The notes below the pieces were generated by a model. It did not search any database and was not told the origin of the DNA. It was given only the letters and a program-made list of their open reading frames with translations. The position numbers and the translations under genes were made by a program. From Trichosphaerium sp. ATCC 40318 (lineage: Eukaryota > Protista > Tubulinea), in the NCBI GenBank assembly GCA_038496445.1, contig JALMLS010000507.1, forward strand, positions 434,001 through 498,000: DNA of 64,000 bases, in the 5' to 3' direction. This document shows positions 36,187 to 41,418 of this stretch, piece after piece; within the stretch, counting starts at the first letter, position 1; each line of letters starts with the position of its first letter.

Positions 36187-39100
36187 TCACTTTACATCTT
36201 GTCCTAACTTTGATACATAGTTCTTAATATGCCAAATCAAAGGTGTATTATTAGATGCAACAACATTCCAAAGTATCTGAACATTTGTCTCAACGATATT
36301 AGCAAATTCGTTCAACAAGCAAAACTTGATACAATCCTCTTGAAGTCTTTCTGCGCTGTACTTGTTTGCAAGTTGCCAAAATTGTAAATAGTTATTCTTT
36401 GATATCTCGTTGACAAGGTAATCCTCACAATATTTACCGAGGTCTTCCATATCAAATTTCTCTGCAAGTATCATTACTTCAAGAGCAACATTTGCATTCT
36501 CAAATGTTGTTTTCTTAAGGTATATGAATTCTTTGACTTTAACAAAGTGATCTCTATTGACATCCATAAGTTTCTTTTCTTCTCTAACGGAGCTTATTGT
36601 AGTTTTATCACCTAAATATAATCAAAAAAGTCATGCGAATTTTTAGTTTAAGAGCCCGTTACTGAGAGCTGAAAGTCACAACAAAAAAAAAAGATCAAAA
36701 AACGGTGACAAAATTGAAAAAAAACTCTTGTGGTCGTACCCAGAAACATATCGTCAAAGTGATCTACATCGCAGATAATATATTTATGAGCATATACGGG
36801 ATCACCTGATTCAAATGTAAAGATAATATCAGAAAACTTCTCATCTTGAAAAAGTTCAGCAATATCATCTTTTTCTTCTGTCTTCACTTCTGTCTTCTTC
36901 CATAGAGATACGTTCGAAAACATTGATAATGTCTTAGACATGGAAACAGATGTTTGTTTAATCATCTCCATATTTCCTTCAAGTACACTAACGCGCCTAA
37001 AAAAAGATAAGAACCAACGAACAAAAAAACAACAAAAAAACAAATTTCATTTGGAAGCAAACTATTTTTCCTGTCTTCTTCATTCGTACTTTTCGGCGTT
37101 GTGGTACGCTGTTACTACCCTAACAATAGCTTTTGAAGAATCAATAGCATAATCCTTCTTAGATTCGTTTGCGTTCTGTTTAGGATCATCATTATGAGCT
37201 GCATATATTACAGTAAATAGAGCTGATACAACAGGCTGTAGGTGTTTTTGTAGGTGTACTAGAAGAATAAATAAGTATCAATTACCTGAACGAGCAGTAA
37301 CAAAACATTGATTTGTTCTTACTTTTATGTATTGGATAAGTGAGTTCGATGGCACAATGGAAACCAACGTTATTTTCTTTGTAAGATAGGCAAGGAACCA
37401 AAAAAGGTGTAACAGCAGCCAAGACTTTACCAGACGCAGCGCTTAGTTTTTTATGCTTAGCATTACGTAAGGTAGGAAGATTACCAGATAAAATTATCGG
37501 AAGAACAAGACCAGACAGAGAAGTACCTAATAAAGAAAAGTTGATGAGATTTTGTTAAAGATGCGTGACGCACTTGTTGCTAACATCATTGCGATTGCTG
37601 TTGCTGCAGGATTAGCAATACCTTCATCCTCTTTGTTGGTAAGAAAAAAGAGAGCTTCCAGAATACCCATATGCACAAAGAAAGGAATATTTGATTCTGG
37701 GAGGCACATGCATTCAACTAATACACAAAGGTTGTTAATAGCATGCATACTTGTAATTTCACCACTCATTACACTCTTGAATAGTACAGATATCATTGGA
37801 ACTAAACAAACAAGACATTAACATACGTAGTAACTAATAATAAACGTACGTGCACCTGCACTGACAATTGCTTCACGACAAGAATCTAAATAAAAGTATT
37901 AATACCTCTTCAAAACACGTGAAAGATTTCGAGGTTTTTTAATTATCACGCGATAAGCTATTTTTTTTGGTTTTTGTTTTACTTACTGTGTTTCATTGCC
38001 ATAAGGGCAATACCAGTTGTTGCTAGCATCAAACAAGCTTGATGCGTTTTATTCAGGTTTTTAACATATCTCATTATCACTTCTTTCTGGTTACTGATTT
38101 CGCGCTCGTAGCCTTTCCAAAAAAGGATGTATCAGTACCAACGATTGTTAAGCAAATTGGTCTAAGTGCAAGTAGCATTTACGTACGACTGATTTGAAGA
38201 AATCTATTCAAGCAACGCATGACACCTGCTTCTAGCATAGCGTCATCAACTGACCGTGAAAACATCTTCAACAAGCATGGTAGTATTTGCAAGTCATATA
38301 CACGAGTAACTACAGCATCTACAAATACTTATAAGACAAGGAAACTCGAGGAAAACATGGCCTTGGAAAGTTTGACAAAAAACCAACAACTTGCTGTCTC
38401 ACTCCATTGACACGTGTCATTGTCTTTGTTCATCAATATACGATAAAACAGAGCAAGGATACAAACTTTTGGATATGAAGAAAAAAAACGTACCATCTTG
38501 TAACGCATATCCAAGAACGTGGGTTGCCACTTTAAGCAATTCAGTGCTTTCACCATTGATAATCATTTCTGTTATCTTATCAACAACACCTTGCTCTATT
38601 AACACCTGTCTACCGATTTCTAAAAGAAGAAATAAAAGTTAAAAAAGAGCAATCTTTTTAAAGCAATTACTGTACCTGTTTTGGCTAAGTTAGCCAAAAT
38701 ATGCAACACGAGTATTTTAGCGCTTAGTGTTACGGAAGAACGAGTCGTTTGAAGGAAATCAAGTAAATGAGGAACAAGACTGTTGCATTCTACTAGATAC
38801 TTCACTAGGCAGTGTGTTAATAGTGCTATACGCGTAATACAGCGATTTAAAGCAATATTAATGACTTGGAAGAGAAAAACAATTGTGTAACGTCATACCA
38901 AGTTTAGGGGTTTCTGAAAATTGTTTAAGTGTTATCAATGACGTTTTAACGATCTGTGTGTTCTCGTGTTGAAGTAGAGAAACAAGAAGATTAACGTATT
39001 TGAGAGAAAATACAATCTGCTGAATACCAGCGTCTTTAGCAGTAATTGTCAGTAAAATACCCAAAGCTTGGAGTACATGATCTCTACGAAAACAGAAATT

Positions 39101-39372
39101 AGGTCTTTTTCTTAGGAACTGTACAATGAGTTCTCTACGCACGCATCGCTCGAATAGACGCAATTCACCAATGGTGTCAGTAATTCGACACTAAAAGACT
39201 ATCAATTAATTGATTGTATGCTTTACACGCACTCTTCGAATATATCTGATAGACTGGTGTTAATGTCTGTATCAGATAACTTTGCTAGCACTTCTATTGC
39301 CTCTGCTGCAGTATCTGGGTTACCAAGCTTTTCAGCAAGCTCTGGTACAGTGTTTTTGTACTCTACAGCCAT
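36187..39372 (-). CDS. ARM-repeat + BTB/BACK protein
   Basis: ARM-like helical exons; FSDIIFTFESGDPVYAHKYII (BTB); LAEKFDMEDLGKYCEDYL, LANKYSAERLQEDC (BACK). Start uncertain. Confidence 0.8.
38362..38462. repeat. 101-bp exact inverted copy of 39689-39789, located in an intron
   Basis: Base-by-base identical reverse complement; lies in the 175-nt intron 38319-38493 of the ARM-BTB gene. Confidence 0.95.
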
Positions 39373-39621
39373 GTACTTGCGCTCCAAACCCTTTTCTAGC
39401 GGCTTTAAGGTACAGGCCAAAACAATGTTAAGCCAACTTTCTGGACGAACTTTCCTAGTCCTTGGCCAACTCAGGTTTACGCATAAATATACTCCTATTC
39501 TTGAGACAATACATTACCCTTTTTTTAAAAGGAAAGATTAGAAAATCACAATTTTTTGAGAAACTCACTTTGTTTGTGTACAAAACCTAGGAAAACCCAA
39601 CAGGTTAGAAAAAAATACGCC

Positions 39622-41418
39622 ATGGAAGGTGTTGATGTATCGTCATGGAATATAATTAACAAAAGCTCTATTACTCCAGTCCAAAAGCGTATCCTTGCTC
39701 TGTTTTATCGTATATTGATGAACAAAGACAATGACACGTGTCAATGGAGTGAGACAGCAAGTTGTTGGTTTTTTGTCAAACTTTCCAAGCTTCACAACCA
39801 ACTCTGTGAAGAGCTTGACGCAAAATATGATAGCGTAGAAAAGTTAAAGCGAATCCTGCATCAACTAGGTTTTGTTAACTCGAGCGGTTATTGGGCATTC
39901 GCCTACAAAGATATACAAACAGGACTACCAATATTCAGAAAGGAAAACAGACGTTTTCAAAGTACACTTGCTCCATTTAACGCAACAAACTAAATACTTC
40001 TTTAGACTTTCTTAATGCACCTTCTTCTTTGTTAAGAACCCATGACGGAATACTTCCCCCACTTTTAGGTATTCAAAATGGCACGTCGCAAAATCTTCGG
40101 CATACTGTGCCATTTTATGGGAACACCCAACGAGACCCAAAACATCACTTAAAAAATGATATGGTGAGCCACTGACCAAAAAACAAAAAAGATATAGACT
40201 CACATTGTACTGCATAGGTACCTAAATATCACCATGTTTCTCCCATAAGGTCACCCAACATTGGCCGCGCATTATTTTCCAGAAACCCCCATGGGGCATC
40301 TGCTTTTTCAGGTACGTTTGAGAAAAAAATACAAAAGTAAAAAAAAACCCAAGTGCTTAGTACTAACACGGTTAGGCGTACCGAAGAATACCTCAAAAAC
40401 ACAAGGCGGAGTGCAAACGAACGAGGAAGAAAAGAAGAAGAACGCACATGATACATTGTTACCTCCAGTCGCAGCTATTGTCCTTCAACATAACCTAGAA
40501 GAACCAGTACTGCATTCCTCTTTGTGAATATTCCACCTAAAAAGATTTAGGTTACTACACTCAATGAAGTATACCAGCATATTTCCTACTTTACAAAGCG
40601 TCCTCTTAACAGTTTTGAGAGCAAGTTAGTACGCTTCACTGTTGGTATATTTATTTTTGGCGACGGCATTCTTGAACGTGAAAATTTCGCTAAGGTAAAA
40701 AAAACTACCCAACAGGATTGTGTACAGTACATGAGTTATTAATTTCTCAGCTTACAGATACCTACCCGATAAATTTAAAAGTACTAGATGAATTATGGAA
40801 GTACTTTGGACCGTGGGACCACCTCCTTTACAAAATACAAGAACTACCATTCAAGGTTTCAATTATTCACTAAAACATGGTTTTATGCTAAACAATCATG
40901 AATCTGAATAATTTTTTTAGACGTTTTATCACGGGAAAATTAGTTGCATAGAAGCTACAAGGCGTATTAAAGGTAAAAGAAAATTCCTTTTTCGCGTTTT
41001 TGAAAAAAACGGTTTATTAGTTCGACACACATTTGACATTATTCTTTCTTACTGTTATACAAAAGGGCAACCTCGTGGTACCTTCTTAATAGTAAACTCT
41101 GACATACCTGGAGTTTTTTCTCTATTGTGTAGTAGAGATCACCAAGGAAGCCATGAAATAGTTGAATTTTCTATTTATAACTGTCGTATTGGTGTAAGAT
41201 GCCAAGAGCGTCATTATGATAATCTAGTAGATTTAATAGAGAGTAACAACCACCTATGGAAGCGTGGATGTAATGGTGGTATATTTAAGAGGCTAATAAT
41301 GCAAAACAAAGAAGAATTTCCTTGGAGTCAAGAAGATCCGAATTATAAACTTTATATTAAAACCACGTTTCGAGAAACGGCATCTTGGCCTTCTTATCCT
41401 GAACCTCCATGTCGGTAA
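39622..41418 (+). CDS. HSF-like DNA-binding domain + low-complexity linker + EF/SH2-like module
   Basis: Eight exons join in frame at GT-AG sites. N-term LFYRILMNKDNDTCQWSET..LKRILHQLGF..YWAFAY; C-term YFGPW..FYHGKISCIEA..GTFLIVNS..YDNLVDLI. Confidence 0.7.

Follow-up and report, generated by a model that had tools for sequence, protein, structure and literature searches.

Amoebozoa have large, poorly charted SH2 repertoires that include unusual domain combinations (Acanthamoeba genome paper, PMC4053784). Two amoebozoan architectures are pertinent to the locus described here: the Dictyostelium-type STATs (Dd-STATa, PDB 1UUR; Pfam STATa_Ig, EF-hand_12 and SH2), and the Shk-type SH2 kinases, in which a TKL kinase is followed by a linker and a C-terminal SH2 domain. 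Also pertinent is a set of SH2 domains that lack the arginine at betaB5 (the FLVR Arg), the residue that clamps phosphotyrosine: both the role of betaB5 and the Arg-less human SH2s RIN2, TYK2 and SH2D5 have been described, and the latter count as accepted members of the family, in which betaB5 marks function, not fold (PMC7530234). The expected consequence of a non-Arg residue at betaB5 is binding of peptide or protein without phosphotyrosine recognition (PMC7530234). Our locus occupies positions 39622-41418, on the + strand, of a 64,000-nt window (the whole stretch of DNA that was analysed) of contig JALMLS010000507.1 from Trichosphaerium sp. ATCC 40318. We lean towards the view that this gene encodes a lineage-specific adaptor, composed of an orphan N-terminal domain, a disordered linker and a diverged linker-SH2 cassette.

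The gene model comprises eight GT..AG exons, all on the + strand and with every junction frame-compatible, and it amounts to 437 or 458 codons. Exon 1 (39622..39961) provides the ATG at 39622, upon which the eight-exon frame depends, together with an orphan N-terminal domain of ~113 aa; its donor, GTACAC at 39962, is in phase 1. Exon 2 (40006..40163) begins a Pro/His/Asn/Ser-rich linker that is probably disordered. The acceptor of this exon is ambiguous: it may lie at 40005 (44-nt intron, with an ACTAA branch) or at 40068 (107-nt intron), both of which are in frame. The linker continues through exon 3 (40218..40311, preceded by intron 2, 40164-40217) and into exon 4 (40376..40506, preceded by intron 3), where a helical region starts; the 3' donor of exon 4 is uncertain, GTACTG at 40507 (44-nt intron) being the best of three in-frame candidates. 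Exons 5 (40551..40694) and 6 (40751..40855) represent the two halves of a linker domain that is EF-hand-like, of the type seen in STATs (EF-hand_12), and the last helix in exon 6 carries L-W-K-Y-F-G-P-W. The SH2 domain starts in exon 7 (40921..40972) with F-Y-H-G-K-I-S-C-I-E-A, which includes helix alphaA with a Cys at alphaA2; exon 8 (41066..41418) covers betaB to alphaB with the string G-T-F-L-I-V-N-S, followed by a ~50-aa tail containing P-N-Y-K-L-Y-I-K-T, and the stop codon. Intron 7 (40973..41065; 93 nt, GTAAAA..AG) is in frame and stop-free, so its read-through in unspliced form adds 31 residues. Introns 4 and 6 have donors that are poor or that yield a very short intron. Counterparts of introns 5 and 6 exist in paralogues, with which an intron just before the W/F-F/Y-H-G motif at the SH2 start is also shared. 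The strings quoted in a preliminary description of this DNA were recovered where it had placed them: C-Q-W-S, LKRILHQLGF and WAF in the exon 1 ORF, FGPW in 40751-40855, ISCIEA in 40921-40972 and GTFLIVNS from 41066.

That description had also spoken of one spliced ORF. The eight-exon model is consistent with this idea, but transcript support, which comes from Logan contigs whose type is uncertain (none of the runs is recorded as RNA), is confined to a single junction: intron 3 (40312-40375; GTACGT...TACTAAC...AG), which is spliced out at the joint 40311/40376. The contig with this joint, which comes from a related organism and extends over exons 2-4, begins at 40089 (covering 40089-40309); it is the only one over intron 2, which it retains, and this retention puts a stop in frame. 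Exon 8 is covered by contigs X1, X3 and X4, whereas none of the Logan contigs was found to cover exon 1 or its junction with exon 2, or to link exon 1 to the rest. We infer a single transcript for exons 1-8 from the compatibility of their reading frames.

These observations bear on an alternative reading, in which the locus is either two genes or a gene in decay: exon 1 would be a separate ORF of 123 codons, which does have its own in-frame stop at 39991-39993, and the linker-SH2 portion would either be a gene in its own right, with 40161-40163 as its ATG, or a STAT/Shk cassette that was duplicated and is now degenerating without function. Such an origin fits with the lack of contig coverage for exon 1 and its junction, with the contig that begins at 40089 and keeps intron 2, with the divergence of the cassette beyond recognition by Pfam EF-hand_12 and the disappearance of its key arginine, and with the absence of a paralogue or orthologue from all of the databases searched. 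On the other hand, the seven downstream exons remain open and in phase over ~320 codons, which is unexpected for a pseudogene at ~36% G+C, and codon usage is best in the predicted frame, out of three, for 8/8 exons. Furthermore, exons 2-5 contain a single in-frame ATG, the codon with which exon 2 ends (40161-40163); it is situated ~170 nt past the exon 1 stop, a distance that could hardly accommodate both a 3' UTR and a promoter, and no AATAAA follows exon 1. The only listed difference in exon 8 with respect to the related organism, 41124 A>T, is synonymous (CTA to CTT). We assign the two-gene or decay scenario an appreciable, clearly minor chance.

The assignment of exons 7-8 to the SH2 family is supported by four weak, concordant comparisons. 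First, Pfam PF00017 (SH2) matches the unspliced ORF (40921-41415) over profile positions 18-75 with E 0.0011 and 19.5 bits, a value that is below the gathering score of 21 bits and that was obtained with a query in which alphaA is split off by the 31 intron-encoded residues. Second, hhalign gives E 1.8e-4 (probability 48%) when run against 18 SH2s that this genome encodes. Third, the neighbours of the SH2 ORF in a language-model atlas are all SH2 domains (score 0.90, 178 shared features). Fourth, FYHG and GTFL align in MAFFT with 17 paralogues, all of which show a 31-column gap exactly over intron 7. When the 64-kb window is translated in six frames, each of two SH2 signature patterns turns up just once, the two being adjacent and in one frame; by these sequence criteria, the SH2 part exceeds chance by far. 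An AF2 model of the SH2 ORF, for which the SH2 alignment with the 17 paralogues was itself the input, has the order alphaA-betaB-betaC-betaD-alphaB (mean pLDDT 48). When this alignment-built model was submitted to Foldseek there was no significant match: SH2 domains occupy 49 of the top 50 rows, all at E 0.18 or worse. A word-index search with the 165-aa SH2 ORF found nothing, a PDB sequence search with that ORF returned nothing significant, and exon 8 retrieved no paralogue of the gene from its own genome.

The feature that sets this SH2 domain apart is at betaB5, where the clamping Arg is replaced by Val (G-T-F-L-I-V-N-S). Arg is present at this position in all 17 of the aligned paralogues, although its apparent invariance is biased, because these 17 were picked as the best Pfam SH2 matches; at least one STAT paralogue (C21) also lacks the Arg, and is thus the second case of an Arg-less SH2 in this genome. 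In an alignment with CRKL, the Arg of the latter pairs with the Val, while the His at betaD4 is kept. Other changes are the Cys at alphaA2, the lack of a basic residue at betaD6, and an Asp within the BC loop. The preliminary description had both phosphotyrosine-binding arginines replaced: the betaB5 exchange stands, but the alphaA2 Cys is uninformative, because this position varies among the paralogues. As had been proposed there, the Val at betaB5 makes it probable that the domain is not a phosphotyrosine reader; that is, its phosphotyrosine binding has most likely been lost. We also noted basic residues that could conceivably compensate, in alphaA (R-R-I-K) or in the R that precedes G-T-F-L.

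Immediately upstream, the identification of exons 5-6 as the EF-hand-like linker that precedes the SH2 domain in this genome's STATs and Shk-type kinases is supported by alignment. Exon 6 aligns with the STAT-group linker at hhalign E 6.7e-5, and with eight linker pieces that carry the FGP motif, from Shk-type and STAT loci, at 3e-4; its last helix, L-W-K-Y-F-G-P-W, corresponds to F-W-x-W-F-G-P in the paralogues, and the same helix is found between kinase and SH2 in the Shk-type loci. Exon 5 retains the paralogue-invariant Asn, Thr and Arg-Pro-Leu (MAFFT) with a 7-residue deletion; its hhalign comparison with the paralogue linkers was not significant. In the paralogues this linker is recognized as Pfam EF-hand_12 and it matches Dictyostelium STATa (1UUR) at E 1.2e-9, whereas the linker at our locus has no EF-hand_12 match. 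In a joint alignment its identity is 21-31% to the STAT group versus 11-14% to the kinase-group pieces of the Shk type, and the positions of the introns that split the linker are common to the genome's STATs. PDB sequence searches with exons 5 and 6 gave nothing significant, and own-genome searches with these two exons uncovered no paralogue of the gene.

At its other end, the protein would start with a domain for which no credible relative turned up among 1.84 billion proteins. An exhaustive HMMER search of this collection with exon 1 yielded three matches at E<=0.001; we rejected them as chance because their scores are summed over stretches of an LRR array, a tandem-repeat protein and a junk-repeat ORF. 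The language-model atlas returned phage translation repressors for exon 1, all with scores below 0.9, which we treated as noise. In its own genome, exon 1 has no paralogue, only a 101-nt copy of part of itself; the GT..AG-bounded arm of this repeat inside exon 1 was considered as an intron and rejected, because its removal shifts the frame into an early stop.

The preliminary description had called this domain HSF-like and the protein a transcription factor, whose HSF/ETS-type winged helix would bind DNA while the pseudo-SH2 would mediate dimerisation independently of phosphotyrosine: a STAT-like logic with different parts. Some of the predicted structure is in keeping with this idea. A single-sequence AF2 model of exon 1 (pLDDT 49) has the order helix, two strands, two helices, two strands, which is that of HSF/ETS winged helices, and when this model was compared with known structures in VIA the top rows were nearly all winged helices, several of them DNA-binding, including the ETS protein FEV at Z 3.7; Forkhead, PaaX and MerR are among the rows of an atlas shape search, at TM below 0.5. 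Exon 1 is also mildly basic (net charge about +4 by manual count), and the C-terminal cassette is truly of the STAT/Shk type. Against these points, no VIA row exceeds Z 4.8, which is within that tool's background; HSF does not appear in the top 50 rows, and many of the winged helices that were matched bind protein (ORC, MCM, Nse, DEP, ESCRT-II, NB-ARC). Foldseek with the exon 1 model, one of the analyses that had been proposed for this N-terminus, gave nothing at E<=0.001. HSF_DNA-bind (PF00447) has no match on exon 1 in a Pfam scan at E<=10, and a six-frame search of the genome with this profile located one true HSF locus only (C8:686743-687078); a PDB sequence search with exon 1 produced nothing significant, neither HSF nor ETS. 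The motif core R.L...GF occurs twice in the 64-kb window, as compared to 1.67 expected from shuffles. The "HSF-like" label is not supported and, since HSF membership fails, the step to a transcription factor is left unsupported. What was right is that no HSF trimerisation coil is evident: the 126 residues after exon 1 are Pro-rich (10% Pro; 57% P/G/S/T/N/Q/H/K) and, judged by this composition, would form no coiled coil. Judging from the model, the exon 1 domain may adopt a generic winged-helix fold, which alone does not imply DNA binding. We hold the transcription-factor reading to be improbable.

The tail behind the SH2 domain raises a further alternative, namely that the protein is a decoy partner for STATs: P-N-Y-K-L-Y-I-K-T would be tyrosine-phosphorylated and captured by the SH2 domain of a true STAT, and since the Arg-less SH2 could not reciprocate, non-productive heterodimers would result. 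The two tail tyrosines lie 111 and 114 residues past the SH2 start, compared with ~116 for the conserved N-P-Y-D tyrosine of four STAT paralogues (manual count); the genome has at least nine STAT loci, and the linker is nearer to the STAT group. However, the tail motif was aligned by no tool, its likeness being a by-eye coincidence of position, and the SH2 domain shows no particular likeness to those of STATs: when compared by hhalign with the SH2 and tail of four STATs, it scores a non-significant E 0.04-0.07 (probability about 1%), and so we rejected a STAT-specific SH2 relationship. A decoy of this kind strikes us as very improbable. Also improbable, in our estimation, is a new architecture in which an orphan winged-helix nucleic-acid-binding domain stands ahead of the linker-SH2 cassette in place of the STAT coiled coil and barrel, and in which the Arg-less SH2, along with a STAT-like tail tyrosine, lets the protein act as a phospho-independent dimeriser or a one-sided STAT decoy.

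Returning to the adaptor that we favour, a single eight-exon gene of an amoeba-type eukaryote would encode a protein of ~437-458 aa. Its C-terminal half would be the EF-hand-like linker and SH2 cassette of the genome's STATs and Shk-type kinases in strongly diverged form, joined through a proline-rich, disordered linker of ~125 residues to an orphan alpha/beta domain at the N-terminus. By analogy with the SH2 domains of the JAK/TYK2 type, the SH2 would serve as a phospho-independent module for protein-protein interaction or as a scaffold. The STAT/Shk linker-SH2 cassette would then have been reused with an unrelated, relative-less N-terminal domain, minus the arginine that clamps phosphate. 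If it is expressed as modelled, the gene would represent a natural case, outside animals, of an SH2 domain that has been retired from phosphotyrosine reading, and a useful one for asking how SH2 folds gain phospho-independent roles. The transcription-factor reading would, if true, be more interesting than the adaptor reading.

How, then, does the locus compare with known systems? With the winged helices of HSF and ETS, exon 1 shares the predicted order of elements and a helix that ends in L-G-F and is followed by a hairpin; it differs in the missing profile and sequence matches, in its structural scores and in the absence of a trimerisation coil. Comparison with the TKB domain of Cbl (four-helix bundle, EF-hand and SH2) is apt insofar as the general logic is that of an EF-hand packed against an SH2. 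In Cbl, L-F-Q-P-W precedes the start of the SH2 by about 17 residues, and its counterpart here, Y-F-G-P-W, does so by 15. The betaB5 Arg is retained in Cbl, a four-helix bundle is not apparent at the locus, and Pfam Cbl_N, Cbl_N2 and Cbl_N3 match none of the exons at E<=10. Thus, of the "Cbl/Shk-type FGPW-SH2" in the preliminary description, the SH2 and the FGPW linker helix are real and belong to a recurrent STAT/Shk-type module, but a Cbl affinity is not detected by Pfam.

The Shk-type SH2 kinases have the W-F-G-P helix in common with the locus, 15-30 residues ahead of a classical W-F-H-G SH2; the locus has no kinase domain, its N-terminus is an orphan, its FLVR arginine is lost, and its linker is the less similar to theirs. 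The Dictyostelium-type STATs resemble it in the EF-hand-like linker that adjoins the SH2, with W-x-x-F-G(P) and N...T...RPL, in the introns within this linker and before the SH2, which are common to the genome's STATs and the locus, and in a tail with a tyrosine after the SH2. Unlike them, the locus has neither a coiled coil nor the STATa_Ig DNA-binding barrel: the genome's 12 matches to PF18214 all fall elsewhere, at 10 places, with two near-identical copies on contig C259, and none lies at the locus, where exon-wise Pfam scans for the N-terminal parts of STATs were likewise empty. Its SH2 starts with the classical F-Y-H-G-K-I-S instead of the G-F-I-S of STATs, its betaB5 is Val instead of Arg, and its linker escapes EF-hand_12. 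The Arg-less SH2s of TYK2/JAK, RIN2 and SH2D5 have His or Trp, not Val, at betaB5, and they occur in FERM-SH2 or other architectures; the locus additionally lacks basic residues at alphaA2 and betaD6, and its kinship to them in sequence does not extend beyond the SH2 family. What would unite them with the domain described here is an SH2 fold that is kept where betaB5 is not Arg.

We modelled the gene on the plus strand at 39622-41418, in a window of eukaryotic character (G+C about 36%, short introns with GT..AG borders), as eight exons whose phases are compatible and whose total, read from the sequence of the window, is 437 or 458 codons. These are, in order, 39622-39961 (carrying the ATG), 40006-40163 or 40069-40163 (the acceptor is ambiguous, both choices being in frame), 40218-40311, 40376-40506 (with an uncertain donor), 40551-40694, 40751-40855, 40921-40972 and 41066-41418 (ending in the stop codon). 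All of the strings quoted in a preliminary description are present: C-Q-W-S, L-K-R-I-L-H-Q-L-G-F and W-A-F in the ORF from ATG 39622, F-G-P-W in exon 6, I-S-C-I-E-A in exon 7 and G-T-F-L-I-V-N-S just past 41066. Among the three forward frames, the modelled one scores best for codon usage in 8 of 8 exons, a support that is partly circular in that frames had been picked because they were open. Homology backs three introns: the in-frame translation of intron 7 coincides exactly with a 31-column gap in 17 of 17 paralogues (other SH2 loci of this genome; MAFFT alignment), intron 6 has a counterpart directly before the W-F-H-G SH2 start in many paralogues, and the paralogues' EF-hand_12 domain is likewise split, near profile position 60-67, as it is here by intron 5. 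Furthermore, intron 3, which has GT..AG borders and a TACTAAC branch, is spliced in Logan contig X2: this contig, from a related organism and with an identity of about 97%, runs directly from 40311 into 40376.

The single spliced ORF of the preliminary description thus holds as to phases and intron 3, but X2 also retains intron 2, which brings an in-frame stop, and no contig covers exon 1; X1, X3 and X4 cover exon 8 and its 3' flank only. Because this contig evidence is thin (none of the runs listed is on record as RNA), we infer, with the balance tilting in its favour, that the eight exons form a single transcript; the competing account is of two genes, or of a decaying copy. The SH2 part requires an upstream start, because the only in-frame ATG within exons 2-5 is the last codon of exon 2.

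The surroundings contain an exact 101-nt inverted repeat (38362-38462 and 39689-39789), found in two copies in the whole genome, both of them these arms. One arm forms codons 23-56 of exon 1; despite its GT and AG borders it cannot be an intron of this gene, since its excision shifts the frame. The other arm lies inside an intron of a divergent minus-strand neighbour (39218-39420 and 38858-39163) whose product resembles armadillo or HEAT-repeat proteins. The start of this neighbour lies about 250 nt upstream from the gene's ATG, and the two probably share a bidirectional promoter region.

Five lines of comparison point to the C-terminal domain being an SH2; throughout the analysis, each search or fold took as its query either one exon or ORF 40921-41415, which is open without splicing. 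Pfam SH2 matches the unspliced ORF at E 0.0011 (19.5 bits, gathering score 21; profile positions 18-75), and a profile of 18 SH2 domains from the same genome aligns at E 1.8e-4 (hhalign). In the language-model comparison, every one of the closest clusters is SH2 (score 0.90, 178 shared features), and the CRKL and CRK SH2 domains are the sole meaningful rows of a PDB sequence search. AF2, given the paralogue alignment, yields a model with its elements in the SH2 order, at a mean pLDDT of only 48; Foldseek with this model returned an almost purely SH2 list, none of it significant. The domain start, F-Y-H-G-K-I-S, is of the classical type.

The phosphotyrosine (pTyr) pocket of this SH2, as read from its sequence, is degraded. 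At βB5, the FLVR arginine position, Val of F-L-I-V-N-S stands opposite Arg of F-L-V-R-D-S in CRKL; βB7 Ser and βD4 His are kept, and a by-eye reading of the CRKL alignment places Ile at βD6 and Asp in the BC loop. Arg and Ser at βB5 and βB7 are invariant in the paralogue alignment, and 17 of 17 aligned paralogues keep the FLVR arginine, these being the best Pfam matches and so a sample biased towards canonical domains. The preliminary description had both pTyr arginines replaced; this is borne out at βB5, but αA2 carries no weight because the paralogues differ at this position (T, N, S, E, R, K, A and others). Given this pocket, and an approximately 1000-fold affinity cost of βB5 mutation (PMC7530234), the domain has likely lost pTyr reading. 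Only RIN2, TYK2 and SH2D5 lack the βB5 arginine among human SH2s, and JAK-type SH2s bind partners without pTyr (PMC7530234). Nor is the loss unique to this gene, since a bona fide STAT of the same genome (locus L048, G000:C21:78400-79700; STATa_Ig plus EF-hand_12, matching Dd-STATa 1UUR) also lacks the arginine: it has N-S-F-L-V-Y-F-A-K-S where its sister L069 (G000:C44:126813-127650) has N-S-F-V-I-R-F-S-K-T, and its SH2 ORF had no Pfam SH2 match at E<=0.01. A rival reading, that the protein is a STAT decoy, is a by-eye lead: tyrosines of a P-N-Y-K-L-Y-I-K-T tail lie 111 and 114 residues past the SH2 start, and a conserved N-P-Y-D tyrosine lies at about 116 in four STAT paralogues. Comparison of the SH2 proper found no STAT-specific kinship.

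Exon 1 is an orphan in the databases searched: Pfam gave one noise-level match, the PDB sequence search nothing and the genome itself no paralogue. Three matches among 1.84 billion representatives were rejected, each score being summed over several stretches of repeat protein. The preliminary description proposed an HSF-like DNA-binding domain and hence a transcription factor. HSF kinship is unsupported: PF00447 detects the one HSF locus found in this genome (C8:686743-687078) and misses exon 1, and the motif core R.L...GF is not enriched (2 observed versus 1.67 in shuffles). The absence of an HSF trimerisation coil was rightly noted, since the 126 residues after exon 1 are 10% proline and of low complexity. 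As to the fold, single-sequence AF2 (pLDDT 49) predicts a helix at 19-34, two short strands, helices at 54-64 and 72-82 and a hairpin, which is a winged-helix order; Foldseek with this model found no match. A wide VIA structural search gave a best Z of 4.8, inside the tool's stated background, its rows being almost all winged helices (ORC, MCM8, Nse, JetB-type, DEP, LOTUS, ESCRT-II, NB-ARC WHD, MntR, and ETS FEV at Z 3.7) with HSF absent, and an atlas shape search gave weak winged-helix-type rows, every TM <0.5. A generic winged helix is thus possible, at slightly under an even chance.

We consider a lineage-specific adaptor the most likely reading: an arginine-less linker-SH2 cassette would act phospho-independently, tethered by a disordered linker to the orphan N-terminal domain. 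Its rivals are the transcription-factor model of the preliminary description, the account with two genes or a decaying copy, and the STAT decoy. The call of a Shk-type FGPW-SH2 was essentially right, and the Cbl affinity also proposed was not detected. Exon 6 matches the F-W-x-W-F-G-P helix of the STAT group (hhalign E 6.7e-5, probability 64%) and eight FGP-motif linker pieces from STATs and Shk-type kinases together (E 3e-4). Exon 5 retains Asn, Thr and Arg-Pro-Leu, residues that are invariant in the domain's first half, with a 7-residue deletion and a non-significant hhalign result; a Pfam scan of exons 5-6 gave no match. The pTyr toolkit of the 70-Mb assembly (642 contigs) is large: six-frame matches to SH2 number at least 80, EF-hand_12 has 35 matches, and STATa_Ig occurs at 9 or more loci. 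The STAT/Shk EF-hand-like linker is the best-defined reference for the FGPW module: W-(F/L/I)-G-P lies just upstream of the SH2 in 8 of 20 SH2 loci examined, and the loci that carry it fall into two groups. One comprises STATs (STATa_Ig, EF-hand_12 and SH2; at least 9 loci); for one of these, the match to Dictyostelium STATa 1UUR (residues 275-341) has E 1.2e-9. The other, the Shk-type kinases, joins PK_Tyr_Ser-Thr, linker and SH2; in three loci (G000:C1:788114-791600, C128:8991-12500 and C247:38400-42128; L075-L077) a tyrosine/serine-threonine kinase domain is followed by a W-F-G-P-L linker helix and then by an SH2 at the C-terminus, the architecture of the Shk-type SH2-kinases known in Dictyostelium.
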